From: Heteronotia binoei
Taxonomy: Eukaryota
Length of the DNA: 64,000 bases
Direction of reading: 5' to 3'
NCBI RefSeq assembly: GCF_032191835.1
Contig: NC_083237.1
Location: forward strand, 18,910,001 to 18,974,000
The notes beneath the pieces were generated by a model. It saw nothing but the letters and a program-made list of their open reading frames with translations, was not told the origin of the DNA and did not search any database. The translations under genes were made by a program, and so were the position numbers. Position 1 is the stretch's first letter. Every line of letters starts with the position of its first letter. Positions 917 to 64,000 of the stretch are shown here, piece after piece.

Positions 917-1190
917 AGAGCCAGTTTGGTGTAGTGGTTAAGTGCCCAGACTCTTATCTGGGACTCTGGGAGAACCGGGTTTGATTTCCCACTCCTCCAC
1001 TTGCAGCTGCTGGAATGGCCTTGGGTCAGCCATAGCTCTCGCAGAGGTTGTCCTTGAAAGGGCAGCTGCTATGAGAGCCTTCTCAGCCCCACCTACCTCA
1101 CAGGGTGGTTGTTGTGGGGGGGGGGAAGGTAGAGGAGATTGCGACCGCTCTGAGATTCAGAGTATAGGGCAGGATATAAATCCACTATCA
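917..1190 (+). mobile_element. tRNA-derived SINE, Squam3-like
   Basis: Head GAGAGCCAGTTTGGTGTAGTGGTTAAG with B box GGTTTGATTCCC and body CTCTCAGCCCCACCTACCTCACAGGG. Related copies at about 1-185, 23148-23600, 24565-24845, 26520-26705, 33760-33930, 51895-52865, 61975-62150, 63790-63985. Confidence 0.7.
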
Positions 1191-2464: not shown

Positions 2465-2590
2465 TAGACCTGACTTTGATAGCCCAGGCTATCATCAGAT
2501 CTCAGAAGGTAAGCAGGGTCAACCTGGGCTAATATTTGGATTACCAGGGTCATGACGCAAACCACCTCTGAAACATCTCTTGCCTTAAAA
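2465..2590 (+). mobile_element. 5S rRNA-derived SINE (5S-Sauria-like)
   Basis: Degenerate 5S core (GATCTCAGAAGCTAAGCAGGGTC...GGATGGGAGAC) joined to a Bov-B-like tail. Other copies at about 3232-3330, 7190-7330, 9625-9770, 13975-14170, 18680-19070, 29935-30120, 54920-55035. Confidence 0.65.
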
Positions 2591-4011: not shown

Positions 4012-4230
4012 TGGCCACTGTGTGACACAGAGTGTTGGACTGGAGGGACCATTGGCCTGATCCAACATGGCTTCTCTTATGTTCTTATGTGACTCAGAGT
4101 GTTGGACTGGATGGGCCATTGGCCTGATCCAACATGGCTTCTCTTATGTTCTTATGTGACTCAGAGTGTTGGACTGGAGGGACCACTGGCCTGATCCAAC
4201 ATGGCTTCTTTTATGTTCTTAAGTTCTTAT
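4012..4230 (+). repeat. Three tandem 67-bp copies of a CR1/L2-class LINE 3' end
   Basis: Unit AGTGTTGGACTGG...CATGGCTTCTCTTATGTTCTTATG starts at 4031, 4098, 4165. Single copies at about 11100-11340, 28690-28830, 42160-42480, 57563-57640. Confidence 0.75.
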
Positions 4231-4369
4231 GAGATCTGAAAACACAGGAGGACTGTTCTCCTTCCCTAACCGAATGGCATGTCTCTTTAGTATTTCTTTT
4301 TCTAGGGATACAAATAACAGGCAATAAAAGTGTGTCATATGTAATGCTAGTTTGCTTATCTATTTATAG

Positions 4370-5343
4370 ATGGAGCTAGTCAATGGGACGAGAGTTCAGG
4401 AATTCATTTTGCTGGGATTTGAGCTTGGGCAGCAGAAGCGTTTCCTCCTTCTCGTCTTCTTCAGCATTCTCTATGTGTTGACATTCTCTATGTGTTGGCT
4501 GAGAACTTCACCATCATCACACTGGTGGTTGTGGACACCCACTTGTCCCGGTTTCCTATGTACATCCTGCTGAGCAACTTCTCCTGGCTGGAGATCTGTT
4601 ACGTGAGCACCACTGTCCCCCGCATGCTCTTCGACCTGGCTTCCCTTCGTGGCATCATCTCCTTCCCTGCTTGCTTCCTCCAGTTCTACATCTTCTTCTC
4701 ACTGGGCACAACAGAATGCTTCTTCCTCTCCGCCATGGCCTTGGACCGGTACTTGGCCATTTGTCACCCCTTGCGCTATCCCCAAATGATGTCCCCAGAT
4801 TCTTGTTATGTTTTGGTAACTGCTTGCTGGCTCCTTGGATTCCTAGTATACGTCATCCCAGTCATTTTGATCTCCAATATGTCCTTCTGTGGCCCCAATG
4901 TTATTGACCATTTTTTGTGTGATCCTGGACCAATTCTGTCCCTGGCTTGTCCTCCATTAGCGAATGCTCCCATTGTCCTTCAGACTGCCATGAATGTTGT
5001 TGTTTGCCTAGGCAATATGTTCTTTGTTGTGCTCTCCTACGGGGCTGTGATTCTCACCCTGATGAAAACCTCTTGCCAAAGTAACCGAATGAAGTCTTTC
5101 TCCACCATATCTTTCCACTTACTGGTGGTGGCACTTTTCTATGGCCCCGTGGCAGGGTCTTATGTCGTCCCGGTTGGAGAAAGTGAGATGAAGGTCATTA
5201 AGGTGATAACCCTCTTCTACACTGCTGTGACACCATTTATCAACCCCATGATCTATTGTCTGAGGAACGATCAGGTGAAGGAGGCACTGGGAAGGCTGTG
5301 GCAGAGAAAGACAATATTACTGGAGAGCAGAGTGACAGTGTAG
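4370..5343 (+). pseudogene. Olfactory receptor, OR11-like (class II), disrupted by an 11-nt insertion at 4486-4496
   Basis: ATG directly after a splice acceptor (tatttatag|ATG). N-terminal ORF MELVNGTRVQEFILLGF shifts frame into the 283-aa ORF carrying OR motifs PMYILLSNFS, MALDRYLAICHPLRY, DHFLCDPGP, PFINPMIYCLRN. 974 nt = 321 codons + 11. Confidence 0.88.
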
Positions 5344-6231
5344 AGAGGAGAGAAGAAGATAAGGAAGGAACACTCAGCTTACCAACATTAATGTACTCAT
5401 CATTGGACAAGAAGAGTTGTTGTGTTGTTTCTGTTTGGTTTCCTTTAAGATCATATTTAATGGAACATGATATTGTATCTCAGAATTCATTTTACGGAAA
5501 ACTGATTTATTTTTGATTTGGAGTTATTTTGTCTATTCTGCACAACTGACTTTTAGACTTTGTACTTTGTTTTCAACATTAGATTGATCTTATCTATGTG
5601 AACTGTACGGACATGTCGTGGTTGTAATTGTAAGCATGAAATAAAATTTGTTTTTTTTTAAAAAAGAGTACCTTTCGCTGCTCATAAATTCAGGTGGGCA
5701 GCCATGTTGGTCTGAAGCAATGGAACGAAGTTTGAGTCCAAACTTTGAAGACCAATAAGTTTAATTCTGGATATAAGCTTCCGCGTGCACACACACACTG
5801 TATCTGAAGAAGTGTGCTTGCACACAAACTTGTTGATCTTAAAAGTTCCACTAGACTCAAATGTTCTATTTCTCTGACCAGTATTTCTTGGATTGCCAGT
5901 CAAAAAGCCTTCCAGTTAAGCTGGAGGAAGAGCCTAGTTTGTTGCTTTCTTGGAAATTCAGAGCTCCCCCTCAAGAAATTTCTCTGATCGCTTTGTGAAC
6001 CAGAACCCAAATTTGCAAACATTTGAAATCCAATATTACCAAGAGCTCTCTGTTGTGCAAGTCTTCTGTAATACTTAAAACGAGAGGCATGATCTATTCT
6101 TATACAGCAGCCTCAGCTGTATAGTTTTTAGGTATTCCATCAAATATATTCAGAAGAACTGTGTGCAGAAAGCAAGTTTTATTTGTTTTTCCCTCTAATT
6201 CTCTTGTAGGAAATAGGTCTGTTTGGATCAA

Positions 6232-6334
6232 TATTGTTATGTTCTGATAACTGTTTGTTGGTTCCTTGGATGCCTAGTGTATGTCATCCCAGTAATTTTG
6301 ATCTCTGATATGTCCTTCTGCGGCCCCAATGTTA
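6232..6334 (+). pseudogene. Olfactory receptor fragment (TM4 region)
   Basis: Translates to YCYVLITVCWFLGCLVYVIPVILISDMSFCGPNVI, closely similar to the 4.8-4.9 kb part of the upstream OR; no flanking OR sequence. Confidence 0.75.
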
Positions 6335-7974
6335 TCCAAATCAACTCTATCTCAGGTTTCTTGTTCAAGGTCTACCAGAAGAAAAGAAGCAAATCATATC
6401 TCAAATCTTCCCAGGAATTTTGAAGGATACGTGTAATACATATGTACCTAAGATCAATATAGGAGGAAGTGCAGCAACACATGAATGACCTACTGATTCA
6501 ATTTCCTCAGTAGCAAGGACATAGATGCTCCTTGAGCGGCACACCACAGTATCTCCCTTCTAATAAAGCAGATGGGAGAATATTGAGCCAAGTCGCGGTG
6601 GAAGCTGCCATGTGTTTAGGAATCAACCAATTCACTAAATAATTTGACAACACCAGTTTCTTGTTCCTGGAAGTAATGGAATTGTGCAGGAGAACCTAAA
6701 TGGTGTTGAAAGTTGATGTCCCAAACCCTTTACTTGATTTCAGATTTAGTTTGGAATAACCTAAGGCTATTAAGTTACTAGTAGAGTCTCCAATAGATCC
6801 AAGGGACCTTTTCCATTTTGACTGAAATGTGTCTGTTAAGTGTTAAAGGTGCAAGAATATATGAATCAAATATTGTAATTGGCTTTTTTTATTGTTATGC
6901 TGCTGTGATTTTATTGTGATTTTGTTATTTATGTTGTGCTCTGCCCTGAGCCCCTACGGGGGAATGGGTGGAATATAAATAAACAAATAATAATAGCAAC
7001 AACAGGAGGGGGGAAACCCAAGCTTCAGCCAGGAATTAGTCCTGAGTATCCATGCACAAGCTTCCAGAGAAATTAAACCCACTTCTACATGCAACACTGT
7101 ACCAGGGACACAGCAGGGGGACTGTAAGTATGGCTCTCAGGAATTTGGTCTGAATGGTTTCAAAGGGTCTAAAGCTGTCCATGATGTGGATAGCTTAGGC
7201 TAGCCCAGTTTCATCAGATCTTGGCAGCTAAGCAGGGTCAGCCAAGGTTAGTATTTGGAGGAGAGAAATCAAGGAAATCCAGGGCTGCTACGCAAAGGCA
7301 GGCAGTAGCAGAACCCCATAAATCAGCTGCAACTTGATGGCAAAAAACAGCTGGCAGGTATACATAACTGGGAGCCATATAGCAATTGTGTAATAACCTT
7401 GGCCATGGAAACACAGATAGCTGAAAGGACATACTCAGGGGTCCTTTGTAGAAAAATAGGTGGTGGAGCTCACCCAGGGATTGTTATGCAGCTGCACCTA
7501 CTATTCAAAGGACAAGGTGGGGAGGAGGAGGGGGGACCCTCAGAAAGGTTCAGGAACTGTGCTCCTGTGAGCTCCTGCTGAATCTGAGGCCTGGACATAC
7601 TCACTTCCTCCGGTATAAATTATTTTTCTCAAAGCAGGGACACTTTTCTAGGCATTCCCAGACACATTCTTAATTTGAATAAGCAAATGGATCGATACAA
7701 TTCCAGATTTGCAAACTGCACTCTTTTCAAAAATGAGAACATGACTCCTTTGTTGAGTTCAAAGCCCATGCCATATAAGGCTCCATCTACACATTACAAA
7801 ATGCTCATGTTTGTTGGGGAAGAACACAAGCCTTTGTATCAGACACTCTATGGGAGTTTTGTCCTCATGTTGTTTCCTCATTCTAGCCTTATCCTAGATA
7901 CAGTGGCAGGAATATGGGGGGGGGGGGGGGTCGCTGTTGGCCTCATAACATTTTTGCTGATTCCTAGAGAGGAC

Positions 7975-23000: not shown

Positions 23001-26000
23001 CTGGAAAGGAAAAAGGAGAGAGGGGGAGACTGAATCTTCCACCCAGTCAAATTAGGACCTGCTCCCCTGGGAATCGTAACAGTTACTGCACTGTGAAAGA
23101 GGAATGGGACTTCTGCGTTTTTTGACAACTGAAAGAAAGTTGTAAAAGCACTGGTTTGGTGTAGTGGTTAAGTGCATGGACTCTTATATGGGAGAACCGG
23201 ATTTGATTCCTCATTCCTCCACATGCAACGGCTGGGTGACCTTTGGCAAGCCACAGTTCTGGCAGAACTGTTTCCTCAAGAGCAGTTTCTGTCAGAGCTC
23301 TCTCAGCCCCACCTCCCTCACAGGCAGTGTTCCCTCTAAGCAGTTAGTGTGAGCTAGCTCACAGTTTTTTAGCCTCCAGCTCACATGTTTTTGTCTTGGC
23401 TCAGGAAGGATGGTCCCGGAGCAAACTAATTATGCTCACTCACAACCTTTTAATGCTTGTAGCTCACAAGACTCCACAGCTTAGAGGGAGCACTGCTCAC
23501 AGGGTGTCTGTTGCGGGGAGGGAATGAGAAAGAAGATCGTAAGCCGCTCTGAGACTCCAAGTGAAGGGCAGAGTAGAAATCCAAACTCTTCTTCTCTTCT
23601 CATTTAAAATGAAGGCTAGAGGCCTGAAAGCTGTTTTTAACCCAGATGAGCTGCCTTATACTAAACCAGACCACTGGTCCATCAAAGATCAGTCTTGTCT
23701 ATTCTAACCGGCAGTGGCTCCTGCAGAGTCTCAGGCAGACATATTTCACATCAAATACTGCATGGTCCTTTCAAATGGAGATGCCGAGGATTGAAGTTGA
23801 ACCTGGGACCTTCTGCATGTCAAGCACAGGTTCTTCCACTGAGCCATTCCTGCTTGCAAAATATGTCCCCAGGGAACAATTTTCACTCAGCAACAACTGA
23901 TCCATGGTTGAGCCACAGCAGCCGTATGGGGGGGGGGGGGGGGCAAACGGCAAGTTTTGCATTGTTTCCCCTGTTTTAAGAGTTGGTTGTTTCCAATACT
24001 CAAGGAATTCAGTTCAGCCTGCCCCAACTATGCAACTTCGGGGGTCTGGGATTATATGAGGCCCCTTGCTCATGCTAGGTGCTGGAGCACGGAAAGGCAG
24101 GGTGAAGGAGAGGGCAACCCAGGCTCACCTTGCCTTGATGCTGGATGTGATGGTGCCGAAGGTGAGGCTCGGGAATAGCCACCGAGTCCCCAATCAGAAC
24201 CCCCCAGCTTTGGGCCATGTTGTAAACGGTCACAGCAAAACAGGAGCCCTCAGCGGAGTCCGTCAAGCCAAAAGTGCTGTAAAGAAATAGAAAGGAAAGG
24301 ACGAAAAAGCATCCAGGTGCATCAGTGAGGGTGAGTGGAGAGACAAGCATTCCCGCATAATACACAATGACAAACTGATGACGCTTGGGTGAGGTTTGTT
24401 TTGTTTAAGCTGAATGGAGCTCTTAACTGTTTCTCTTGTGTTGAGTCCCTACTTTGAGGAAAAGCAGAATATAAATATTTTAAACAAATAACAAATAAAA
24501 GATTCAAGAAGCTGGTTGTGTCCTATGAAGTTCTAGAACTGATGCCTAAACTGAGCTAAAAATGTCCTGTTATAAAGAAGAAGAATTGCAGATTTATACC
24601 CTGCCCTTCTCTCTGAATCAGAGACTCAAAGCGGCTTACAATCTCCTATATCTTCTCCCCCCACAACAGATCCTGTGAGGTGGGTGGGGCTGAGAGAGCT
24701 CTCACAGCAGCTGCCCTTTCAAGGACAACTCCTCCGAGAGCTATGGCTGACCCCAGGCCATTCCAGTAGCTACAAATGGAGGAGTGGGGAATCAAACCCG
24801 GTTATCCCAGATAAGAGTCTGCACACTTCACCACTACACCAAACTGACTCTAAAACACATCAAAACGCACCATCCACCCCATTTGAATGCCAAGGGTACC
24901 TAGAGGGGAGCTCTTGGTAGATTATTCTTGTTGGAACTGCCTTTGCTTGGAGGTCTACTGAAACCTTAGCCTGAACACATTTCGGAATCAAAGTCAACAT
25001 ATTTCTTTTTATTTAAGCAAGCAAACATTAGAAGAGTGAAAAAAGGGGAACTGGGGAGAGCTCCTGCCGGTTGCAGTTCTCAGCTGTGTTTTTTGTCCCT
25101 TGCCTGTAGACCTAAAGGCTGGGTAAAGCCAGAGGCACCAACCCTCGGAGGACAGCCAAAGGGCTAGTTGAATAAGAAAAAGAGAATGAAATTAGCAAAG
25201 GCAAAAGCTACGCGTACAGGGGGGCCATGGAGAGATTGACACATGTGGGATGGATACTCACAAAGGCACCTTCTCCTCTGTGGTCAGGCTGAAGAGAACT
25301 TTTCCCAGCACCACAGTGCCTGGGTTAACCCCAGCCCTCAGGGTGTTCAGGGGCCGCTGCTTCAGCTCCACCTTCTGACCCGAAGGGCCCTGGTAACGTC
25401 CATCCCCACAGGGGCCTAGCTGAGAGGGACGCAGGCTTCCCAGCATGCTTTGCAGCCTCTTCCCTTTCACCTTTCCCTGAAAGGGAGAGAGCAGCAGGTT
25501 TCGTCAGTGTGGCTGAGGGGACTGCGTTCCTAAACACACAAGGCTGCGGAAGGGCAAGGCATCTGGTCTCGTTGCCACGATACCTTATTTTCAAGGAGGC
25601 TGGTGAGCCTCTCCAGGAAATCGACAAGGTGGTTGCTTCCGTTGACGTGGTTCTGGCCAAGCTGGGTCGAGGGCTCCGGCCTGCGCAAAACCCTCCAGAG
25701 CCGCCGTGTAGTTTTCTTCATACTTATAGAGCTACCCAAAAAGAACAAAGCACAGAGTGATGGGTTAGAAAAGAGGGGGAAATTCCCAAAGGAATTAGAA
25801 CTTGTAGCACTGTAAATATGAACATATGAAGCTGCCTTATACTGAATCAGACCCCTGGTCCATCAAAGTCAGTATTGTCTTCTCAGACTGGCAGCGGCTC
25901 TCCAGGGTCTCAAGCTGAGGTTTTTCACACCTATTTGCCTGGACCCTTTTTTTGGAGATGCCAGGAATTGAACCTGGAACCTTCTGCTTCCCAAGCAGAT

Positions 26001-29000
26001 GCTCTACCACTGAGCTACCGTTCCTCCCTAAATGAAGCAAGGAAGAGGGGTGGGACATGTAAAGGTGTCAAAACACCAAGGTCCAGGGAAANNNNNNNNN
26101 NNNNNNNNNNNNNNNNNNNNNNNNNNNNNNNNNNNNNNNNNNNNNNNNNNNNNNNNNNNNNNNNNNNNNNNNNNNNNNNNNNNNNNNNNNNNNNNNNNNN
26201 NNNNNNNNNNNNNNNNNNNNNNNNNNNNNNNNNNNNNNNNNNNNNNNNNNNNNNNNNNNNNNNNNNNNNNNNNNNNNNNNNNNNNNNNNNNNNNNNNNNN
26301 NNNNNNNNNNNNNNNNNNNNNNNNNNNNNNNNNNNNNNNNNNNNNNNNNNNNNNNNNNNNNNNNNNNNNNNNNNNNNNNNNNNNNNNNNNNNNNNNNNNN
26401 NNNNNNNNNNNNNNNNNNNNNNNNNNNNNNNNNNNNNNNNNNNNNNNNNNNNNNNNNNNNNNNNNNNNNNNNNNNNNNNNNNAGGTTGCCACCGAACGTT
26501 CCAGAGTCCTTTCAGATGGGTTAAACCAGCGTAGCAAAGTGGGTAAAGTGTTGGACTAGGATCTGGGAAACCCAGGATGGAATCCTTTTCCTGCCATGGG
26601 AGCTCACTGGGTGGCCTTGGGCCTGTCACACACACTCACAGCCTAGCCTCACCGGGTTGTTGTAATAAAACATAGGAGAGAACAATGAAAGCCGCTTTAG
26701 GTTTCCCAGGGGCACCAGGCCCCCTTTCCTTTCAGCTCACCGTGGCTCGATTGAGGTGCAGGTCAGGATTACACGAGGCCGTGGGGTCCACTTTCTCCTA
26801 CAGAAAGAAGACCAAGAGAAAGGTGTGAGCATTGCTTTCTCTACACCTCCTCCCGCAGGGCTTACAAATCCCACTGCTATCTTGGGAGCCTGGGTGAGTC
26901 AAAACCACAATTTTATGCAGAAAAGAGCCCTTCCCACCACCGCCCTTAATCCCTCTGCGAGAGCAGCTCTTTCCACCCAAGTTTCTGACGTCACACAGAG
27001 AGGCCCAACCGAGCCCACCGCCCCTTCCTCCCCAGACTGCAGCTTCTTCCAGAGCCCCTTCCAGCACCTACTGCTTGAGCGTAGGCACTCAGTGCCTGCT
27101 GAGAGATCTTGGGATTCTGTCCTGAGTTGAAGAACAAAGAGAGGTAGGCGTTGCCCAGGACATCTGTGGAAAGACAGAGAATGGGAATTACTGAGAACAC
27201 CGCCATCCCCTTCCTTCCCAGAGCCTCTCACCCTCAGGGAGTGGCTAAAAAGAGCACGGCAGACTCACACCAGGAGCGGCCATCACGCACGTCCATCTGC
27301 ACGGCCAGCTTGGCCTGCCGCACGCTATCCATGACGTTCTGCGCGTGCTCGTCGGCGGAGGTGGTGCGCAGCTGCCGTAGCACCATAGAGAGGTTCTGCA
27401 AGGACACCTTGTTTTTGCACTACAGGAAAGGGGGCAGGCGGGAGAAGAGAGAACCAGGTTTGGCGGACGTTAGGACCCTCCGTGACAAGATCTATGCATA
27501 GGCCAAAATCTCACCAAAACCACTAGCACAGCCCTGCCCATTTCCCAAAAAGTACTTTTATGGGGAGATGCCCTTCCACTGAAGTGCAATGGTATCTGTC
27601 TGATCCCCTACCGATGGAAATAACCTTTCGAAAAATTGAGAAGTACCACCAGATAGTCATTCAAACCAAAAACCCACCACCCTTCCTCTCACACGGAGGA
27701 ACTATGGGAGACTTACATGGCTCAGGGCTCCAGAGAAGCAGGTATGCGCAGCAGGGACGTCACCCTTTTTCCAGTAAACTTCCCCTAACTGATTCCAGGC
27801 CTCGACCAGCTCTGGGTCCAACTTGACCGCTTTGGAGAGCAGCTCTTCAGCTTGGGCGCTGTAATCTGGAGACGCATTCAGAGCTTTCCCTTTCAGCATC
27901 AGTGTGTGGGCTTGTCCCTGCTGCAGGCCTGGCCGAGGAAGGAAGGAAAAAAAACTATCTTTGCACTCCAGTTCAATGAACTCCACCCACCAGAGCACAG
28001 CAGGGCCCTCCTTAAAGGTGGTAGGAAAAGGAAAGGTCCCCTGTGCAAACACCAGTCGTCTCCGACTCTGGGGTGACGTTGCTTTCACAACGTTTTCATG
28101 GCAGACTTTTTATGGGGTGGTTTGCCATTGCCTTCCCCAGTCATCTACACTTTCCCCCCAGCAAGCTGAGTACTCATTTTACCGACCTCAGAAGGCTGAG
28201 TCAACCTCAAGCCAGCGACCTGAAAAGCCAGCTTCCACCTGGGATCTAACTCAGGTCATGAGCATCTCTAAAGGTGGTAAGCAGTTGTTAATTCTTACAC
28301 ACAGCACATGCCCCCTACAACACATTCAGGCATTTTCCTCATGTGCGTGCATGTTAAATGGACAGCTGAGGCTATTTAGCAGAGTACCCCAAATGGTAGA
28401 AAATCCTCAGAACTGGGAATCTGTAAAAAGTAATGCAGAGGAATCACACACAACATTCCATTATGCACTCCAAAGCTTTAACTGGAATAAGGGATATTTT
28501 AAAACTAAGAACAAGAGATAAAAAGATGGCAATGCAGGCCTCAGCTCACACTTTGTTGGTCCACAAGCTATGGCAGATCCTGCTGAAACAACCAGGCAAG
28601 TCCACTCTTAACAAACAACAAAGTTCGGTCTTAACAAACAACCAGGCAAGTCTGCTCCATATTCCACACAATATTCCTTGGGAGGGGCAACAGTGGGAGG
28701 ACTTCTAGTGTCCTGGCCCCACTGATGGACCTCCTGATGGCACCTGGGTTTTTTGGCCACTGTGTGACGCAGAGCGTTGGACTGGGTGGGCCATTGGCCT
28801 GACCCAACATGGCTTCTCTTATGCTCTTAATACAAGAAACTGAGAAGAAAACAGTATTTTAAGCATGTGGAGACTTTTGCAAGGGTGAAGACTCTGTGGA
28901 GCCCAGCATCAGAGGAGTTGTGGCTCAGTAGGTGTGCATCTGCTTGGCATGCAGAAGGTCCCAGGTTCAATCCCAGCATCTCCAGTTAAAGTATCAGGTG

Positions 29001-38600: not shown

Positions 38601-39074
38601 ATTAACAACATTTGTGGCAGGGGATAAGCTTTCGCAAGTCACTGCTCACTTCTTCAAAGAGCTATTTTATTTTTCACCCTACAGCATTATGTGAGAAAAC
38701 TGCAACCAAATCTAAAGAAGTTAAGAAAGAATCTTGTTGGCACCTCAAAAGCTAACAAAATTAACCAGTAACTTTACCTGGTATGTCCAGAAGGCCAGGG
38801 CCCTGGAGCTGATGTCTAGAATAATCTCTGGACGAAGTCCTGCGAGGACCATCGCTTTATATTCTTCAGAAGGGTTGAGTTCTGTCCGAACAATATCTAA
38901 CTTGCCGGACAGGGCACTGTTGCAAGCAGGGCAGACTGCCGGTGAACGGCTGAACTCCCCACTACCATGCTGGTCACAGAAGATATGGGAGCAGGCTGTG
39001 ACCCACGCATAGCCTGAAAGCTTGACTCTACATTTGCGGTAATTGCAAAGAAGCATATCTTCACAGACGGACAT
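35422..39074 (-). CDS. CCNB1IP1: E3 ubiquitin ligase CCNB1IP1 (HEI10), 276 aa, 3 coding exons
   Basis: Exons 38778-39074, 36919-37252, 35422-35621 (297+334+200 = 831 nt, open). RING domain CNYRKC...CSHIFC...CPAC, coiled coil, C-terminus FKPFF...KIKRM*; canonical splice sites. Confidence 0.97.
36367..36890. mobile_element. hAT non-autonomous element (TAGGGTTGCCA TIR)
   Basis: TIRs and 8-bp TSD TCCCAAAC. Confidence 0.85.
36919..37252 (-). CDS. CCNB1IP1: CCNB1IP1 second coding exon (coiled coil)
   Basis: VHQERLYQEY...AVFGFPL; donor G|GTAAGG. Confidence 0.96.
37803..38100 (+). mobile_element. Sauria SINE
   Basis: Full head-to-tail consensus match. Confidence 0.8.
38778..39074 (-). CDS. CCNB1IP1: CCNB1IP1 first coding exon (RING domain); exon acceptor at 39143
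   Basis: MSVCEDMLLCNYRKC...AFWTYQ; donor CAG|GTAAAG. Confidence 0.96.
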
Positions 39075-48045: not shown

Positions 48046-48247
48046 CAGGGCTTTTTTTGAGCAGGAACACACAGGAACGCAGTTCCAGCTGGCTTGGCAT
48101 CAGGGGGTGTGGCCTAATATGCAAATGAATCCTTGCAGGGCTTTTTTCTACCAAAAAAAGTGCTATGTGGAACAATGGTGACATCAGGGGATGTGGCCTA
48201 ATATGCAAATGAGTTCCTGCTGGGCTTTTTCTACCAAAAAAGCCCTG
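48046..48247. mobile_element. hAT MITE (CAGGGCTTTTTT TIR)
   Basis: TIRs at both ends; two ATGCAAAT octamers inside. Confidence 0.8.
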
Positions 48248-48377
48248 CGCTTACCACCGCTGTATTTTCTCAGCTTGTTGCAATCACCTATTTTCCAGTA
48301 AACCAGGAAAAGCATTTGATTCCACTTGCATATCATTAATATTATATTGTTGTCGTCGCTTCCTAGGATCAAACACG

Positions 48378-49418
48378 ATGCCTCAAATACTCCACAAGAG
48401 CAAAGCGCCGGGAGTTGATTTCTGCGGGGTGGATGACTGTTATTACATTGTCCGCTCCGACCTGGGCTGCTACATGAGATCAAGCAACTTCAATGAGGGC
48501 AAGGACCTGGTAGTGTTTAACCTGCACAATTCTTGCCAGGGTGGAGATCACTACTTAGCCCACGAGGACAGCTTGTTCTACATCATCAAAGGAAACAACT
48601 ATCGCCGTGTCGCTAACATGAATAAGGATGAAGATGCTGTCGTGTACAGCCTTCACCCCAACTGTCAAGGAGGGGACCACTACCTCTCTGCCTTTGGAGC
48701 CTTCTACATTATTTTCCAAGGCAGATGTGTTTACCGCAGGGTCTCTAATATGAATACAGATGAAGATGCAGTTGAATACACCCTTCACCCAAATTGTCAG
48801 AACGGCCTTTATTACTGGGGTGTGAAGGATTACTACTACTTTGTGAAACCGCACGATGAATGGGGGATCCAGTACTTTAGGTGCACTAACTTCCATGAAA
48901 ACCTAGATGCTGTTACCTATTCCTTCCATGGGAGTGTGGTCCCCTTTCTCCCTGGAGGGCTGGCCATCGATAAAGGTTCAGCTTTTGGTAGATGGGAGGC
49001 CATCAAGACCATCTCCAACAACTCTGACAGTCCTATCCAGTGGAACAAGAAGATCACAAAGAAGGTGGGATACAACAAGATGCAGATGAACAGTGTGGAG
49101 CACAACTGGAAAATCAGCATGAGTGCCTCCTATCAGGCGGGGGCCCTCACTGAAGCCATTGCCAAGTACCAGTTCTCCCTCTCAGCCGAATATGGAGGAA
49201 GCGCTGTCCAAACCCAGCAGGAAGACTGGAGCGAAGCCACAGAGATGGAAGAATCTGTTCATGTGAACCTGCAGCCCAAAAGCCAGATGTACATATGGCA
49301 ATACCAACTGGGCTTTGGCAAGCAGCCTGTCTTGTTCTGCCGTGACCTGATGTTTACTAATGATTCCACTCCGCCCACAACAGTTCCATTGCCGCCTTCC
49401 AGCACATCAGCACGTTAA
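48378..49418 (+). CDS. Uncharacterised 346-aa protein: four ~44-aa repeats (probable beta-propeller) plus putative aerolysin/lysenin-type beta-pore-forming domain
   Basis: 1041-nt stop-free ORF; splice acceptor ttcctag| 11 nt before the ATG; tandem AATAAA about 205 nt after the stop; internal repeats GDHY...FYII...YRRV.NMN.DEDAV.Y.LHPNCQ; alternating Ser/hydrophobic hairpin at aa 244-274. High confidence that it is a gene; the product call is an inference. Confidence 0.85.
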   Translation: MPQILHKSKAPGVDFCGVDDCYYIVRSDLGCYMRSSNFNEGKDLVVFNLHNSCQGGDHYLAHEDSLFYIIKGNNYRRVANMNKDEDAVVYSLHPNCQGGDHYLSAFGAFYIIFQGRCVYRRVSNMNTDEDAVEYTLHPNCQNGLYYWGVKDYYYFVKPHDEWGIQYFRCTNFHENLDAVTYSFHGSVVPFLPGGLAIDKGSAFGRWEAIKTISNNSDSPIQWNKKITKKVGYNKMQMNSVEHNWKISMSASYQAGALTEAIAKYQFSLSAEYGGSAVQTQQEDWSEATEMEESVHVNLQPKSQMYIWQYQLGFGKQPVLFCRDLMFTNDSTPPTTVPLPPSSTSAR

Positions 49419-49623
49419 AGTCAAGTCCAAATCAGTAGTTTGATCAGGAACTAGGGCTGCCAGATCATCCTAAATCCCTGTATCTGTAAGGTGGGGGGTA
49501 CTGTTATCATAGGATGGGGCTTGGTGATGCACACTGAACATCTGCATTAATAGGTATGTACACCTCGTGGTATATATGTGTAGACACAATCATGTGACTC
49601 TGAAGACATGGGCTGTTTCTCAG

Positions 49624-49636
49624 AATAAAAAATAAA
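49624..49636 (+). terminator. Tandem polyadenylation signals of the 48378-49418 gene
   Basis: AATAAA at 49624-49629 and 49631-49636. Confidence 0.7.
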
Positions 49637-50765
49637 ATGGAAATTACATGCTAAATGTAAAATGCAGCTGTGTTTTAAATGCCACTTCTTACCTCCATCA
49701 TCAATGTGTACGGGCAGCAGGCATCAAAAGTATTAGTGTACCTACATCCATCTCTGAAGAGATGCTGCATGGCCGTAAGGTACAGGGCAGGATTCCAGAC
49801 TGGGGAAGACAGGAGCAAAAGATATCAGAAAGTACCATAATTACTAAAATTGGAGATTCCTAAATTATTCCACCGGCATAGATATTATCCCCTAAACCCA
49901 GTTAGGAAGATGTCTATGGTTATGGTGTAGCGAGGGGAAAACGTTCTGCCTACATGAAGAACACTTGCATTGTTAGCATACAGATAAATTACGCTTGGCA
50001 TAGATTAGTTAGAACCTTCTATCATACTTAATTTTAGTGAGAGGTGATGGGAGTCAAAAGTGCCTGGGGATACCAGTCTTCCTGAAGCTTCCAGTAGTAC
50101 AGTGCTTATTTTTCAATAAGAGGTTTTGCAGTTTAAACCCGTCGGTGCATTATGCCTCTTCAGTCCTTATCCCAGATTTTAGGTCAGGTATGAAAAGGGA
50201 CTCAACAGCGATTGTTCATTGGTGAGTAAAAAGCATTCAGCACTCGCCCAGACATTCACTCCAGCGGTAACAGCAAACTATTAAAATCAGACCCCAGGCT
50301 GAGTGAAACTGGGCGTTTAATTTTCTGGTCTTGTCACAGGGCCTTATTTACTCCCAAGCAGTGTTCCCTTCCCTCTAACCTGAGTTAGTGTGAGCTAGCT
50401 CACAGTTTTTTACTCTCTGGCTCACCCATTTTTGTCTTACCTCAGGCAGGGTGGCCCCAGAGCAAACTAACGTATGCGGTAGCTCACAACTTTATAGTTC
50501 ACAAAATAGAATTTTTGCTCACAGCTTAGAGGGAACATTGCAGTCCCAAGACAAATTTTTCACTACAGAACAAGAAGGCAAGCCCAAAAGTGGAACTCGC
50601 ACCACAGCTTTCTTAGGCTTTATGTTTTCATTTTAGACATTAGAGAGGAAGGGGGGGGGGTTAAGGAGAGAGAAAAGATTTGAGGAGAAAATTACATGGG
50701 ACAGGGCAAAGGAGAATGAATTTGATCAAGAAGGAGTTAATAGGCTCCATGACAACTATTTTGAG

Positions 50766-55980: not shown

Positions 55981-56131
55981 GCATGTGTGACCCCGCAAAA
56001 TTCAGTGCAGAACCATGGGATGGCCCAAACCCATCCCTAGGCTCTCCTGAGTGAAGAAAGGCCATCATTAATATACGATGACACAAAAACCCACTGCCCA
56101 AGTCTTGTGACAGTGAGAGGAACGGTCATCG
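55981..56131 (-). ncRNA. SNORA79: H/ACA snoRNA/scaRNA SNORA79 (ACA65)
   Basis: Minus strand CGATGACCGTTCCTCTCACTG...GGCAGTGGG...ATATTA (H box)...TCTTCACTCAGG...ATTTTGCGGGGTCACACATGC (ACA box 3 nt from the end). Matches human SNORA79 as I recall it; pocket sequences are complementary to U6 around U31 and U86. Confidence 0.9.
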
Positions 56132-57065: not shown

Positions 57066-57756
57066 GTATAGATAGAGGGTGAGCAGCAGACCTACATATA
57101 GGTAGGTGAGCAGCAAATTAGCATGCAATATAATTAAGGTGTTTAACAGATGCAAGGACCAAACATGAATAACAAGTTTAGTTTATATGTTACCATTTCT
57201 TAGGATTTAATTCCAGGAGAAAACATAATAAAGGATATTCATTCCTTGCATCTGTTAAATACCTTCATTCTGCTGTGTGCTAATTTGCTGCTCACCCTCT
57301 ACTTAAATGTAGGGACTGCCAACTTCCATTTCAATGTATCTGATGGAGGCTGCTTGCACATGAAACCTTGTACTTCCAATAAAACTTTGTTGGTCTTGAG
57401 TGCGCCACTGACCTCAAACTTTGTTCTGGTGGGAAAGCTGATGGAGAACAGTATTGGAATTCCAGGAACACTCCAACTCATTTTTCAAGGGACCCAGTTT
57501 ACATTGTATTTGTGAGCCAAAATAAAAGAAACAGGCTACACAATACTATGCAATTCCCAACACATAAGAACATAAGAGAAGCCATGTTAGATCAGGCCAA
57601 TGGCCCATCCAGTCCAACACTCTGTGTCACACAGTGGCAAAAAATGTTTATATATATATATATAACACAGAAAAGGGAGGAACATTCTTTACGTAAATGT
57701 GCAGCCACCTCCATTTGCTAATTTTTACATTTGTGGATGCATCTGCTGTGCCTAAG

Positions 57757-57834
57757 AATCTGCTCAGTGCATTCACATAATCAGGGTTAATCAGGTGAAA
57801 CACGGACAGAATGTGCAGCTCATCACAGCAGACT
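57757..57834 (-). ncRNA. SNORD126: C/D box snoRNA SNORD126
   Basis: AGTCTGCT-GTGATGA (C box)...GTCCGTGTTTCACCTGAT...CTGA (D box)-GCAGATT with a terminal stem; core matches human SNORD126 as recalled; same order relative to SNORA79 and CCNB1IP1 as in human. Confidence 0.9.
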
Positions 57835-59389
57835 CTTCAAAATATTCTCCACTTCCGGCTAATCCCCGAAGGAATGGGAAATCAAAATCAAACCAACTAA
57901 GGTACAGGAACTCATCGGTTCAAGAGAAGAGATCATACCTTTCTCCTACTGACCACCGAGGGCACCGAAGTCCCACTACAAGTTCTGAAATCCTTGGCCT
58001 TTTGTGGATTCGCTCAGCCCGTCATGTGACGGTGTCAGTCACTTCAGAATTCTATGGAATCAAGGTCTCTCGTTCATTTCCCTTCAAACCTGTGAATGAA
58101 AGCATCTATTATTACCACCATTCTAAAAGCAGGCAGACTGAGCCAACAAATCAAAACAGTCGTACTGATGCTTCTTCCATTGCAACATCTGTGTTTCATC
58201 TAACTAACAAGAATGCCAAATGTTAAGCCACAATCTATGCAATATTCCGGACTTGCTAACCACAGACAGATTTTAAGTGGGTAGCCATGTCGGTCTGAAG
58301 AAACAGAACAAAGTTTGAGGCCTGTGGCACGTTTAAGACCAACCAAGTTTTCTTCTGGGTTTAAGTTTTTATGTATGCACATTCTTCTTCAAGCAATGTG
58401 CATGCACCTGAAAGTTTGCATCTTGAATGATACTTTGTTGGGTCTTAAATGGCACCACTGGACTCAAAAAAATTTCTCACCAGACAATACAGCTAGTTTC
58501 AATGCAAGTTCAAAAACATGATGTGTTTTGAAGCAAATTAATTGATCATCTCAATCGGGCTTCTTAGATTACTACTACATTACTATGTTTATATTTTTTA
58601 TTCACATTAGGTCTTCCGCACCCCAGATCAGAGTTCTCTGGGGCAGGCAACACACAGAAGTTACAACTGCTATTACCTTTATAGAAACGAGCCTGTAGAA
58701 CTTTGTCTACATTGAGCCTTACATCAATGCATAGGGGACATTCAACGTTTACACCAGACCAGTGCTTTCCACCAACTACAGCAGGGCTTTGATACAGAGG
58801 TCTCAAACAGAACCTCTCCATTTTTTTTTCCCAACCTGGAAAATAAGAGACGTAAACATAACAGGTTACCAGAACACACAAGGCACCTTCACACATTAGA
58901 ATCAAATCTTGAAGGAAACGCAGTGCAAAGGCTACTGAATATTATGCTACATGCACAGTTAAAGGTGTTTTTTTTTCACATATGGAGCCCAAACAGCCCT
59001 TGAGATTCTCAAGATATTCACTTAAAGTTCAAGTGTTTCTAAGGTTGCACTTGCACAGAAATTACGTGGACAAAAACACCTTATTTAAATCTCAGGGATT
59101 AAAATGGCCTCGATTGAAGCAGCAGTACATCACCATCTTTCCAGCACTTTGATTAGCAAACTGCTCTTTTCTATCTCTTCCATCTTCCTCCCCAAGAGGA
59201 AAGCTAACCTAGCATCACTATAGATCCAGATGGGTAGCAGTGTTGGTGTGAAGCAGTAGAACAAAGCAAGAGTCAAGTTGCTCCTTTAAGACTAACGAAG
59301 TTTTATTCAGAATGTAAGCTTTCGTGTGCTTCTAGCACACGAAAGCTTACATTCTGAATAAAACTTCGTTAGTCTTAAAGGTGCAATTT

Positions 59390-59683
59390 GGGAAAGGAAA
59401 TGAAAGGTCCCCTGTGCAAGCACCAGCCGTTTCTGACTCTGGGGTGACGTTGCTTTCACGGCAGACTTTTTTACAGGGTGGTTTGCCATTGCCTTCCCCA
59501 GTCACCTACAGTGTCCCCCCCCCCAGTAAGCTGGGGGCTCATTTTTACCGACCTCGGAAGGACAGAAGGCTGATTCAACCTGGAGCCGGCTACCTGAAAA
59601 CCCAGCTTCCGCCGGGGATCCAACTCAGGTCGCGAGCAGAGCTTAGGACTACAGTACTACAACTTTAACACTCTGCGCCACGG
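59390..59683 (-). mobile_element. Sauria SINE
   Basis: Consensus match; flanked by a GGTGCAA duplication. Confidence 0.8.
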
Positions 59684-59699
59684 TGCAACTTGACTCTTG

Positions 59700-60300
59700 C
59701 TTTATTCGAGCATCACTATGTTAAAGCTCGCGACAATCCGTCCGATTTCCGCCTAGTGCCGCTTCAAAATAAAACAAAGTGGCCACAAAGCCTCTCCCGG
59801 CTCCAGGTATGTTCAGTGGTCCAAAGAAAACCCGGGGCGCACGCGGGGCTTGCATAAAGGGGCGTCGCACGTGCAGAGATTCGCCTTCAGCGCTGCAACG
59901 AGCAATGAATGGCGCATCAGGGCAGATGCGGCGAGCAAAACACGTGCCAAGGCCTGACCTGGAAAAGCGACCCCACGTGCCATCACACACCTTGGGTCCA
60001 GGGGCTGCCACACCCAAATATTCCAGCCGAACAACCCCTACTGCGATTACAGATCACCCCAAAAGAAAAAGAGGGGCGGATGACAAAACTAACCTGGGAT
60101 TAGCAGCAGATCCGTTTGCAGGCCCGAGAGAAGCTATGCACACCAAGGCCGCTTAGGAGACAAAGCGGAAAAGGATGGGCGGAGCAGGAAATACTGCCAC
60201 GCTGTCTTGCTATTGGCAGAGAAGACACGCCAATCACCTTTTTTTTTTGTTTGTCACGTGAGCTTGCGGTGGGGGACGGGTAGAAGGATGCATCCGAATG
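59700..60300 (-). promoter_or_regulatory. CpG-island promoter with TCT/5'TOP start, GC box, CCAAT boxes and four CACGTG E-boxes
   Basis: Minus strand TCCTTTTCC at 60175-60167; GGGCGG at 60177; CCAAT at 60212 and 60230; CACGTG at 59868, 59941, 59974, 60255; donor CAG|GTTAGT at 60094. Confidence 0.75.
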
Positions 60301-62166
60301 TGTCCCATATGGTGAAAATGCTTTGCAGGTCGTTCGCATGAGTTGCAGTTTTCTGGCCAAACTACCCACGTATCTGAATACTAAGTAATGTGTGATGCGG
60401 GAACATTTGTGTCTAGGGAAGATGCATGTCGTACCTCGCTGGAAGCGCAGACAGTGCTAATTCTTAATCCACGGGCCATCCCCCACCAGCACTCAGACAC
60501 CACCCCCCCCCCCCGCATTTCCTAATGTCTCAAGATTAAGAACAAAGATCGAGTCCAAATGGCACCTTTGAGACGAACAAAATTTTATTCTAGGTATACC
60601 CTTGAACACATGAAACTGCCTTATACTGAATCAGATCCTTGGTCCATCCAAGTCAATGTTGTCTACTCAGACTGGCAGCTGCTCTCCAGGGTCTCATGCT
60701 GAGGTTTTCCACACCTATTTGCCTGGACCCTTTTATAGTTGGAGATGGCAGGGATTGAACCTGCGACCTTCTGCTAACCAAGCAAATGCTCTATCATTGA
60801 ACCATCGTCCCTCCCTTTCGTGTGCACACAAATGTGCTTATACTCGGAATGAAATTTTGTTGGTCTTAAAGGTGCCACTGACCTCAAACTTAGTTCTGCT
60901 GCTCTAGACCCAACACCGCTACCCATCCATATCTTTCTCAAGGTTAATTATTGTCAATACTGTGAACACAGGGTGGTTAGGTTGCCAGCCTCCAGGTGGG
61001 GCCTGGAGACCTCTTGCTTTTACAACAGATCTCCAGCTGACAGAGATCAGCTCCCCGGGAGAAAATGGCTGCTTTGGAAGGTGGACGTGGCGTTGTACCT
61101 TACTGAGGCCCCTCCCCTGTCCAAACCCCACTCTCTCTCAGATCCACCCCCAAAGTCACCAGGTGTTTTCCAGCACAGACCAGGCAACCCAATGGGGAGG
61201 GGATTTCAACATGTAAGAAACCGGACCGGGTGGTGGATTTCAAAATCAGATGACTTTAAGCCACACCGCAGTTATCCTTGCCCAAGTAGGCCTGGCACTT
61301 AAGTTTGTCGAGTGGTAAGGCCAAGTGGTTCACACTGCAAACCAGTCTGGGAGGTTCCATTGAGACACACTCATGAGTGTGGGATGGGGTTGTCAATCTC
61401 CAGGTGGGGCCTGGCGATCTCCTGTCATTACAGCTGATCTCCAGACTACAGAGATCAGTTCCCCTGGATAAAATGGCTGCCATGGAGGGTGGCCTTGTTC
61501 TCCACTGAGGTGAGGTCCTGCTTCCCCAAACCCTACCCTGCCCTCCCGGTCTCCACCTCCCAAAATTCCATGAATTTCCCAACCCAGAACTGGTAACCCT
61601 AATGGGCGAGGCCACAATATGTGGGTACCGTTTTGTCATTTGCTTATTTAAGTCGGGGTTTTGTATTTTGTAAATCACTTTGGGCCCCAAAGGGCAGCAA
61701 TTTTAAATAGGTCAGAAATAAAACAGAAATAGGTCAGAAATAAAACAGAACGTAACAGCTAAGCTTAACTTAACCAACTATAAACTCTACATTTTTCCTT
61801 CTCTTTGCTTCCAGGTTCCCCGTGAACTAGGAACTACAATAGCTGTTTTTAGTACAATTTGAGGCTGCAATAATAGTTCAGCAAAATCTTAATGCAACCT
61901 GCATTACCATGCTACCATGCAATCTGCATGCCTCACCCACGTCCAGCTGCTTGCTACTGTTCAACAGCAGACACCCCACAAAAAGTGTGATTTAGTGGTT
62001 AAGAGGGTAGGATTAGGGAGACCCTTGTTTGAATCACCATTCTGCCATGGAAGCACACTGAGGGACCTGACATTCTCGGGCTAATTACCTCACAACATTG
62101 TTTTGAGGATAAAACAGGGACAAGAAGAATGACATAAGCTGTTTTCCCATTCGAATCACCCACAAC

Positions 62167-62353
62167 CAGTGTTCCCTCTAAGCTGAGTTAGCGTGAGCTA
62201 GCTCACAGATTTTTAGCCTCCAGCTCACACATTTTTGTCTTAGCTCAGGAAGGAGGACCCTAGAACACACGAATTCATGCAGTAGCTCACAACATTAAGT
62301 AGCTCACAAAGTAGAATTTTTGCTCACAAGACTGCAGCTTAGAGGGAACATTG
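62167..62353. mobile_element. hAT MITE (CAGTGTTCCCTCTAAGC TIR)
   Basis: 8-bp TSD CCCACAAC. Confidence 0.85.
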
Positions 62354-62394
62354 CCCACAACTATATTGTTCATTATTATGACCACTAGTGTGTA

Positions 62395-62915
62395 TAGGCT
62401 TCCCAATCCCCAGGTCCCAGAGAGGGATCCCCCAGTTTTTCAGGCTTCCCCCCTCCCCCAGCCAGCTGGCCGGCGGGGGAAGCCCCACCCCCAGAGCCAT
62501 CATGCACCTCCATGAACGATTCTCATAAAGAATTATAGGGAATTGATCTGCGGGTATCAGGGGCTCTGCGGGGGGGGGCTGTTTTTTGAGATAGAGGCAC
62601 CAAATTTTCAGTATAGCATCTAGTGCCTCTCCCCAAAATACCTCCCAGGTTTCAAAAAGATTGGACCAGGGGGTCCAATTCTATGAGCCCCAAAAGAAGG
62701 GGCCCCTATCCTTCATTATTCCTATGGAAGGAAGGCATTTAAAAGGTGTTCAGTCACTTGAAATGTGATGGCCAGAACTCCCTTGGAGTTCAATTGTGCT
62801 TGTCACAACCTTGCTCCTGGCTCCACCCCCAATGTCTCCTGGCTCCACCCCCAAAGTCTCCTGGCTCCACCCCCAAAGTCCCCAGATATTTCTTGAATTG
62901 GACTTGGCAACCCTA
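62395..62915. mobile_element. hAT non-autonomous element (TAGGGTTGCCA family)
   Basis: 8-bp TSD AGTGTGTA. Confidence 0.85.
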
Positions 62916-64000
62916 AGTGTGTACTGGATGTCTGCAAGGAGCCTAATTAAAAAAAAAACACAATAACACAAAAAGTACAAAGCTAGCCCCGTGGCAGGTT
63001 TCCTGCGTAAGGAAGCAAGAGCAAGCAAGGTGGGGCAACTTGGATGAAATTATGTTGGAGTGATACTTTAGGGGGGGTTAGCATGAGACTTACGAAGGAC
63101 CAAGAAAATCTGGCTGAAAGGTCAAGGTAGAACAAACTCTGCAGTTGCTCAAGTTTCTTAACTTTTCAAGGAAAGAATTTGGTCAACAGAATAGTCAAAC
63201 ATGCAGCACAGTATATAAGGCGGCTGAAAAGGTGAGTAGGATCAGAGGAGAATACAGGAAGACGTGAGTTTACTGCAAGATTCTCCACTGTCCGGATAGA
63301 CGTTTGGGGAAGCCACAGGAAAATCCCTGGCTGGATAGAGAAACTCTCTGATTTAAGGAGTGGTAAGACCTTATATATGTACAAGGGGGGAGTCACAAGA
63401 GTGGGAGGGGAGTCTAATTTCTCCTTCTCCCACTATTTTCTCTTTCCTCCATAGGCTCTCCCCTTTTCCTGCTTCCTTCCCACCCAACAGCCAACCTATC
63501 TTCCTTTGCATCCCACCATATTTTCAGCTTTCCCTCCTTCCCTCTCCCTGGCAGCCTCTACCCAACAAAACTATAGTCCAATTGTGTTATGCTGCTCAGT
63601 GGAGAACCTGCAAAGACTTGCAGAGGGCACCCCATTTCCCCTTGCATCTCCTCCTCATAATTTTCTCTTTCCCTCCTGGTCATGCCCACATCTTCACCTC
63701 TTCCTTCTTCCTTCTCTCCTTCCCACCCACCAACAAACCCAGCTTTTATCTGCCCTCTCATCTACATTTATATTTATCATTTATTTACCTCATTTTTCAC
63801 CACAACCCGAAAGAGCTTATGTCATTCTTCTTGTCCCCGTTTTATCCTCAAAACAATGTTGTGAGGTAATTAGCCCGAGAATGTCAGGTCCCCCAGTGTG
63901 CTTCCATGGCAGAATGGTGATTCAAACAAGGGTCCCCCTTATCCTACTCTCTAAAACTCTTAACCACTAGATCACACTGGCTTTTGTGGGGTGGCTGCTA

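Follow-up and report, generated by a model that had tools for sequence, protein, structure and literature searches.

A gecko open reading frame joining a hemopexin-like propeller to a lysenin-like module, a candidate vertebrate pore former

Few aerolysin-type proteins are known so far from vertebrates, and each of them (natterin-like/Dln1, the lamprey protein LIP, toad betagamma-CAT and EP37) is an immune or membrane-trafficking effector. These known families match the Pfam models Aerolysin or ETX_MTX2, with jacalin, DM9 or betagamma-crystallin domains attached, and in a review of the vertebrate members the partner domains are crystallin, lectin and immunoglobulin-like only (PMC7995273). A propeller-type partner was described for Xenopus LOC613112 and LOC494812, listed among vertebrate aerolysin-like proteins as "tachylectin-2-like + aerolysin-like" (Szczesny et al. 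2011, PMC3110756). The proven pore formers lysenin (Eisenia fetida; PDB 3ZXD, 5GAQ, 5EC5), CEL-III (a sea-cucumber hemolytic lectin; PDB 1VCL) and monalysin (PDB 4MJT, 4MKO) are built in other ways: lysenin has an N-terminal pore module followed by a C-terminal beta-trefoil, CEL-III has two ricin-type beta-trefoil lectin domains and no propeller, and monalysin lacks both a propeller and a distinct receptor domain, becoming active once its pro-peptide is cleaved. Here we describe an open reading frame (ORF) of 346 codons from the gecko Heteronotia binoei, located in a window of 64,000 nucleotides (the whole stretch of DNA that was analyzed; positions 18,910,001 to 18,974,000 of contig NC_083237.1, assembly GCF_032191835.1). 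Its predicted product joins an N-terminal, four-bladed hemopexin-like propeller to a C-terminal module of lysenin/aerolysin type. We consider it rather likely that the ORF is a selectively maintained gene of this architecture whose product works through the pore mechanism proposed below.

The features of the gene, in window positions, are as follows.

48260..48377, forward strand: conserved upstream segment of 118 nt, holding a TATA-like TTAATATTATAT and the polypyrimidine/AG at 48350-48366

48350-48366, forward strand: polypyrimidine tract and AG, a consensus acceptor 11 nt before the ATG, read from the sequence

48378..49418, forward strand: complete coding sequence, 346 codons plus stop, ATG start, single coding exon, from the ORF list

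48411..48947, forward strand: N-terminal domain, aa 12-190, four repeats of about 44 aa, predicted four-bladed hemopexin-like beta-propeller

48948..49382, forward strand: C-terminal module of the aerolysin superfamily (lysenin-like), aa 191-335, predicted five long strands and an insertion segment

49035..49271, forward strand: pre-insertion strands and insertion segment, aa 220-298 (79 residues), between core strands 2 and 3

49107..49199, forward strand: amphipathic hairpin, aa 244-274, WKISMSASYQAG / YQFSLSAEYGG

49368..49415, forward strand: proline-rich C-terminal tail PPTxVPLPP, from alignment A1, P337 and P339 invariant in vertebrates

49624-49629 and 49631-49636, forward strand: two AATAAA in overlapping spacing, about 205 nt past the stop codon, read from the sequence

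The reading frame contains zero internal stop codons, its product begins with MPQILHKSKAPGVDF, and a tblastn search of the window with this protein detects one family copy only, at 48378..49418. A preliminary description of this DNA, made from the letters before any database search, had noted an intact frame of 346 codons, a splice acceptor and tandem poly(A) signals; all three were recovered here, the acceptor as a predicted one.

A word-indexed search of 5.8 billion proteins returned 353 homologs at E <= 0.001 (best E = 1e-203), all about 343 aa long, and an exhaustive phmmer search of 1.84 billion representative proteins returned 203 clusters. Every one of the 353 is named "uncharacterized" or "hypothetical," in line with the earlier failure to recognize any named vertebrate gene. 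Identity to the window protein is 83% in Gekko japonicus, 82% in a second H. binoei protein and in Paroedura, 77% in Rhineura, 75% in Dermochelys, 70% in coelacanth, 69% in sturgeon, 67-69% in axolotl, Xenopus and gar, and 54-66% in many ostariophysan fishes and frogs. The family ranges over geckos, lizards, turtles, alligators, snakes, amphibians, coelacanth, sturgeon, gar and ostariophysan fishes, and no bird or mammal occurs among the named matches of the protein searches. What had been introduced as a reptile gene is therefore not specific to reptiles, the family being found across bony vertebrates and in bacteria.

Selection has evidently acted on these genes. Pairwise ratios of nonsynonymous to synonymous substitution (dN/dS, Nei-Gojobori) are 0.22 between the window copy and Gekko, 0.14 between the window copy and another squamate contig (L008), and 0.34 between the window copy and its neighboring paralog (dS 0.29), while a three-point estimate along the window copy's own branch gives about 0.26. 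Both domains are constrained, with dN/dS of 0.07-0.26 in the hairpin region, and the window copy retains all residues that are invariant in the family (alignment A1). That this looked like a maintained gene is thus borne out by pairwise ratios of 0.14-0.34, well under 1. It is virtually certain that the family is a real, functional gene family, and the window ORF, one of several paralogs, is most probably a functional, selectively maintained gene.

A second, more divergent sauropsid subfamily is found in alligators, many lizards, turtles and snakes; its alligator members (P0133, P0271-P0277) bear N-terminal extensions of 120-400 aa, and a Pfam scan of the extension-bearing P0133 gave no match. 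Snake members (the P0137 cluster) evolve fast and are 37% identical to the window protein, and they include UniProt entries from Hypsiglena and Micrurus. The latter we take to derive from venom-gland transcriptomes, an origin that would imply transcription of the family in squamate oral glands. Most members of the family lack a leader, and signal-peptide-like N-termini are seen in few (P0106, P0114 from Podarcis and the bacterial P0253).

Foldseek searches with the whole model were swamped by generic propellers, and the C-terminal domain was therefore folded by itself. The AlphaFold2 model of residues 190-346, built from 63 sequences including distant and bacterial ones, has a predicted local distance difference test score (pLDDT) of 83, with strands at domain residues 13-25, 31-43, 99-109, 113-124 and 127-138 and a 55-residue insert at 44-98. 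Its matches are almost all of aerolysin type, whether found by Foldseek against the PDB, by VIA-align, in the Swiss-Prot part of the AlphaFold Database (AFDB) or in the ESM Atlas, in agreement with the aerolysin/lysenin-like module first proposed from sequence. In the PDB, monalysin (E 1.4e-3), lysenin, Cry78Aa and Clostridium perfringens enterotoxin (CPE) rank at the top, and Tpp80, BinAB, CEL-III, aerolysin, parasporin-2, Dln1 and the lamprey immune protein are also matched. In AFDB Swiss-Prot the order is lysenin-related proteins 2, 3 and 1, then monalysin, and thereafter hydralysin, CPE, BinA/B, EP37, CEL-III and the zebrafish aerolysin-like protein. The ESM Atlas matches are ETX_MTX2, Toxin_10/Vps62 and monalysin clusters, and the nearest language-model neighbors outside the family are clusters of aerolysin/ETX_MTX2 and monalysin. 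Each score is modest taken singly; it is because the four structure searches are unanimous that the domain is assigned an aerolysin-type fold.

The sequence profile points the same way. A profile hidden Markov model of 63 C-terminal domains, compared with PDB sequences, has as its top match the pore module of lysenin (residues 16-128) at a borderline E = 0.001 and 22 bits, followed by the natterin-like Dln1 at a non-significant E = 0.25. The lysenin alignment falls on W-x7-N, ITxxxG (KIT..G) and P-x-S-x4-WQ, which are the motifs whose spacing had been likened to that of lysenin. ITKKVG (aa 226-231) and P300-K-S-x4-W307-Q308 are present as first described, and the motif given as W-x6-N is actually GRW206-x7-N214, with the x7 spacing that WKEGYVYEN of lysenin likewise has. 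Single relatives give sub-threshold Pfam matches to Aerolysin (2.8e-4), ETX_MTX2 (5e-3) and, in one member, CEL_III_C (1.8e-4). Pfam matches to YEATS, MCM6_C and Polysacc_synt_C were set aside as sub-threshold noise, and a single-sequence phmmer search of the PDB gave only a match to a CEA repeat, which is spurious. We regard an aerolysin-type fold or homology of the C-terminal domain as highly probable, and on these models lysenin, monalysin and CEL-III domain 3 appear to be the closest relatives of the pore module. The proline-rich tail behind it is disordered in the model (pLDDT below 50 for aa 339-346) and may act as a pro-peptide or as a motif for binding.

Pore formers of the aerolysin family have a segment of characteristic size that turns into the barrel. 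Pre-insertion strands and loop together measure 75 +/- 8 residues with 23-44% Ser+Thr, and the lysenin barrel is made of an amphipathic loop and two feeding strands, 74 residues in all (PMC4823867). The corresponding segment of the window protein, composed of strands 220-232 and 288-298 plus the insert, is 79 residues long and falls within that range, and the family value is 78.9 +/- 0.5 residues, or 78.9 +/- 3.9 with distant members. Inside the insertion segment lies the hairpin that had been pointed out beforehand, consisting of a strand W244-Y252, an 11-residue tip QAGALTEAIAK and a strand Y264-Y272, with aromatic residues at both strand ends and strict alternation of polar and hydrophobic residues along both strands. 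The period-2 alternation is retained in the column-mean hydropathy of 48 vertebrate relatives and recurs, as Ser/Thr-rich versions, in six bacterial homologs, so that the hairpin is conserved as well as present. Period-2 scores are equally high in ordinary beta-strands of the window protein; hence it is the position of the hairpin that is informative, and not the alternation by itself.

The N-terminal half had been thought to form a propeller, and it does so in the model. Four repeats with the motif GGDHYL..FYIIKG..YRRV.NMN.DEDAV.Y.LHPNC align locally with z-scores of 5-30 against shuffled sequences. The full-length AlphaFold2 model (48-sequence alignment; pLDDT 82, predicted template modeling score 0.77) places 16 strands in four blades at a pLDDT of about 90, and the 11 best PDB structural matches of the domain are hemopexin-like domains without exception. 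The four-bladed fold is that of hemopexin, MMP PEX domains, vitronectin and the legume PA2-type albumins/lectins, whereas identity to hemopexin-like propellers is 7-14% and the repeat motif GGDHYL..FYIIKG..YRRV is peculiar to the window family; the Pfam Hemopexin repeat (PF00045) matches none of 48 members at E <= 5. The propeller is presumed to be the target-recognition module.

Lysenin and the lysenin-related proteins are thus the best match by sequence profile and the top one by structure in Swiss-Prot. Identity to lysenin is only about 14%, and the domain order differs, the propeller coming first in the window protein and the pore module last; no domain after the pore module, lysenin-type C-terminal beta-trefoil included, is present in the window protein model. 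The hairpin-forming segment has 74 residues in lysenin versus 79 here. Lysenin contacts sphingomyelin through K21, Y24, Y26, Q117 and E128 (PMC4823867); in the alignment with the window protein the first three become E, K and I, and only the equivalent of W116-Q117 is retained. CEL-III, despite its different lectin domains, has its domain 3 among the best structural matches of the C-terminal domain.

Closer in general plan are the endogenous vertebrate proteins Dln1/Aep1, lamprey LIP/LPFP, toad betagamma-CAT (BmALP1) and newt EP37, in which an N-terminal domain precedes the aerolysin-type module, likewise here; the structural match lists of the C-terminal domain include LIP, toad ALP, EP37 and zebrafish ALP. 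The window family differs from these in having no Pfam model and a hemopexin-like propeller instead of their partner domains, and the natterin-like combination of a jacalin or DM9 lectin with an aerolysin domain gave no such Pfam matches in the window protein and 48 members. The Xenopus proteins LOC613112 and LOC494812 have a propeller-type and then an aerolysin-type domain, as the window protein has, and they may be the same family seen through the fold recognition of 2011. Their names are absent among the Xenopus family members retrieved, and the propeller of the window protein is not the five-bladed one of tachylectin-2 type; its four blades and the silence of Pfam argue that at least the description differs. 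In full-text searches, the two Xenopus names were found in PMC3110756 only, four names of the family's own members were found in no paper, no paper combined "aerolysin-like" with hemopexin and vertebrate, and none among the best-ranked matches had hemopexin and aerolysin together. We rate the family as an unannotated one within the aerolysin superfamily and its pairing of a hemopexin-like propeller with a lysenin-like module as a new architecture.

A propeller joined to a lysenin/aerolysin-type module makes membrane pores probable, and the odds that family members actually form pores are somewhat better than even. In the mechanism we propose, a soluble monomer would dock through its propeller onto a membrane ligand (a glycan, lipid or protein), and oligomerizing monomers would assemble a ring. 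The 79 residues of segment 220-298 would then peel from the sheet, the core pair W244-Y252 / Y264-Y272 being metastable in the monomer, and would refold into a long beta-hairpin contributing to a beta-barrel across the membrane. We infer the oligomerization, the ligand and the biological role, which may be host defense or regulated membrane permeabilization, from this likeness. The immune, skin-defense or cell-death function suggested in the preliminary description is likewise a candidate role. With most members lacking a leader, several sites of action are conceivable: the protein could act in the cytosol, after unconventional release or upon cell lysis.

Several results speak against a maintained pore former at this locus. 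The window protein has no hydrophobic leader or signal peptide at its N-terminus, which leaves its access to target membranes without an explanation. Pfam and NCBIfam scans of it give nothing at threshold, and neither Aerolysin (PF01117) nor ETX_MTX2 (PF03318) matches it at E <= 1. Ser+Thr over aa 220-298 amounts to 16% (family 22 +/- 3%), below the 23-44% of known pore formers (PMC4823867), so that the region first described as Ser/Thr/Lys-rich is only moderately so. Residues 235-285 are modeled as low-confidence helices and not as a hairpin. The part of CEL-III that becomes the stem is helical as long as the protein is monomeric, and the low-confidence helices resemble this region of the top match, CEL-III domain 3. 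Aerolysin-fold proteins that form no pores (BinB, HA-70 and a non-toxic Bacillus thuringiensis crystal protein) stand in the same match lists. The exact 346-aa product has no record in a collection of 153 billion genes, which does hold neighboring paralogs of the same assembly, nor in the list of 353 protein matches, and the window copy therefore appears to be unannotated. As to RNA, a search for runs listed none for the gene and none from this species; three runs of relatives (word share 5-6%) were compared with the window, and the contigs found, which are about 88% identical over the coding sequence from 48360 onward and include short ones of one metatranscriptome, are those of relatives and cannot prove transcription of the window copy.

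Some of these points would suit a protein of aerolysin-type fold that makes no pores and serves as a soluble binding, regulatory or structural protein, its propeller and elongated beta module binding ligands or partners as in BinB, botulinum HA-70, newt EP37 or the inhibitory toad BmALP3. The non-lytic proteins in the match lists, the low Ser+Thr of the segment and the missing leader all fit such a role, and the 70% identity of the gecko and coelacanth proteins, together with very short branches, is extreme for a defense effector and fits housekeeping better than an arms race. We nevertheless hold it to be unlikely: the amphipathic strand pair, with its period-2 pattern and aromatic caps, has been kept in bacteria and vertebrates alike and lies precisely within the insertion segment, the segment is as long as in pore formers, and lysenin, monalysin and CEL-III, the closest relatives, all form pores. 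Doubt may attach instead to the window copy within a functional family, as a young redundant duplicate, barely or not expressed, that is becoming a pseudogene and whose frame is intact for too little time for decay. The exact protein is unrecorded whereas four family genes are annotated on the same chromosome, a paralog lies 18 kb downstream, SINE-like insertions abut the locus upstream (48050-48250) and the matching RNA is relatives' only. Against this, a dS of 0.29 to the neighboring paralog shows that the duplication is old, dN/dS on the copy's own branch is about 0.26 and not about 1, the invariant residues are all retained, and the 118-nt upstream block is conserved with the poly(A) signals intact; incipient decay is accordingly an improbable account.

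The likeness to aerolysin might also be a chance similarity of elongated beta-sheets, the C-terminal domain being a new fold with an unrelated function, as the lack of a Pfam match at threshold would allow. Given that across four libraries and two aligners hardly any match falls outside one superfamily, that an independent sequence profile leads to lysenin and then Dln1, that the sub-threshold Pfam matches are independent and lie in the same clan, and that a language-model search arrives at the same families, such a coincidence is very improbable. Finally, bacterial homologs of up to 40% identity and a single-exon coding region could suggest that the ORF is no host gene at all and represents bacterial contamination or a transposon or retroviral frame. 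This is refuted in practice: the ORF is set in vertebrate sequence between a RING-finger exon (taken to be CCNB1IP1) and the genes SNORA79 and SNORD126, with SINEs around; orthologs and paralogs exist in dozens of chromosome-level vertebrate assemblies; Pfam scans find no transposon domains; and the window holds one copy only. A match to a transposon or to a family without pores had been named in advance in the preliminary description as grounds for abandoning the proposal, and none was found. On balance we prefer a selectively maintained gene for a propeller protein with an aerolysin-type, probably pore-forming module.

Homologs of full length and with both domains also occur in bacteria. The closest, P0145, lies on a proteobacterial-type contig (L009/L010:6001-7056), aligns with the gecko protein at 40% identity over 314 residues (E = 6e-72), and is flanked by a LysR regulator and, 2.5 kb away, by an Hcp gene of the type VI secretion system; its nearest database relatives are all vertebrate proteins. 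Other bacterial homologs, at 22-29% identity, are on a Vibrio chromosome that is a metagenome-assembled genome (MAG), from which the copy was retrieved with a bacterial-only alignment, and on related metagenomic contigs. One bacterial homolog lies in a MAG with Sortilin/BNR neighbors. In an unrooted maximum-likelihood tree, the nine bacterial rows all group to one side of a branch (support 90), P0145 being nearest to the animal side. This distribution points to horizontal transfer between bacteria and animals in either direction, the unrooted tree giving no direction. A further homolog (P0335; 343 aa, 51% identical over 337 residues with no gaps) is found in the assembly of the octocoral Paramuricea clavata, as a genuine cnidarian copy or else as a contaminant.

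The wider interpretation, that these are unstudied leaderless pore-forming effectors which passed horizontally between bacteria and animals, stayed under constraint for >400 million years, expanded in clusters and were lost in birds and mammals, is tentative and as a whole rather unlikely. Since there is no signal peptide, the targets could be intracellular membranes or the plasma membrane, reached from the cytosolic side. If true, the protein would be a regulated cell-death or endolysosomal pore, a non-mammalian functional counterpart of gasdermin/MLKL, rather than a secreted toxin. The family attracts attention through its unusually strong conservation, its absence from bird and mammal matches and its close bacterial relatives; it would offer a tractable case of toxin-gene exchange between bacteria and animals and bears on membrane permeabilization in non-mammalian vertebrates. 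Pfam is blind to it, and hundreds of genes are therefore annotated "uncharacterized." It is carried by Xenopus, axolotl and several fishes, and knock-outs and recombinant assays are thus feasible. In terms of annotation, an ORF absent from the gene collection gains a name and a testable function.

The sequence flanking the coding region was compared among relatives. The 118-nt block at 48260-48377 shares about 85% identity with the sequence upstream of the H. binoei paralog LOC132584161 and of the Gekko japonicus gene, and further upstream the homology stops at short interspersed element (SINE)-like repeats. The block may represent the 3' part of an intron or, alternatively, a core promoter of TATA type. 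In the Logan contig L008 (77% identity) an acceptor-like ttccag precedes the ATG; this contig is probably genomic and hence does not decide on splicing. Downstream, the depth of RNA run X3 declines after about 49515-49712, which is weak evidence that the poly(A) signals are used. Directly 5' of the block, window positions 48050-48250 consist of two tandem SINE-like copies (…ggggtgtggcctaatatgcaaatga…), and the depth of the metatranscriptome run X3 over this SINE-like region is enormous.

Family paralogs are spread across about 1.8 Mb of the gecko chromosome, on which four other family genes are annotated. The nearest, LOC132584161, encodes 343 aa, is 82% identical to the window protein and lies 18 kb downstream of the window ORF in the same orientation. 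It occupies L012:10001-11032, a locus whose bases 1-6733 equal window positions 57268-64000 at 100% identity; in window numbering it would be at 67268-68299, about 3.3 kb past the window end. Other copies on the same chromosome lie at about 17.48 Mb (subfamily B) and about 19.23 Mb, the latter adjoining a PARP14-like gene. Clustering is also seen in Emys orbicularis, in which three divergent members stand in tandem within 10 kb (L011:10001-19624), with 46%, 42-45% and 34% identity to the window protein by tblastn; the first of them has an intron in its coding region. In Chelonia mydas, an old gene model (P0172, EMP26819.1) fuses NFATC4 (Rel homology domains), RIPK3 (kinase and RHIM) and a C-terminal domain of the family, which implies that a family member directly adjoins RIPK3 in the green turtle.

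Three further genes or exons were located around the ORF in the window.

38745-39074, reverse strand: RING-finger exon, read from the sequence

55981-56131, reverse strand: SNORA79

57757-57834, reverse strand: SNORD126

The RING-finger exon we take to be CCNB1IP1/HEI10 from its likeness to the human protein. In humans, SNORA79 and SNORD126 both lie within introns of CCNB1IP1. The ORF apparently sits antisense between the RING-finger exon and the small nucleolar RNA (snoRNA) genes, inside a CCNB1IP1/snoRNA host unit. An apparent synteny between the Gekko locus and the window flanks was discarded, being confounded by repeats and by the paralog past the window end. Rfam tRNA matches at 25953-26024, 28914-28984 and 60741-60811 may be tRNA genes or the tRNA-derived heads of SINEs.

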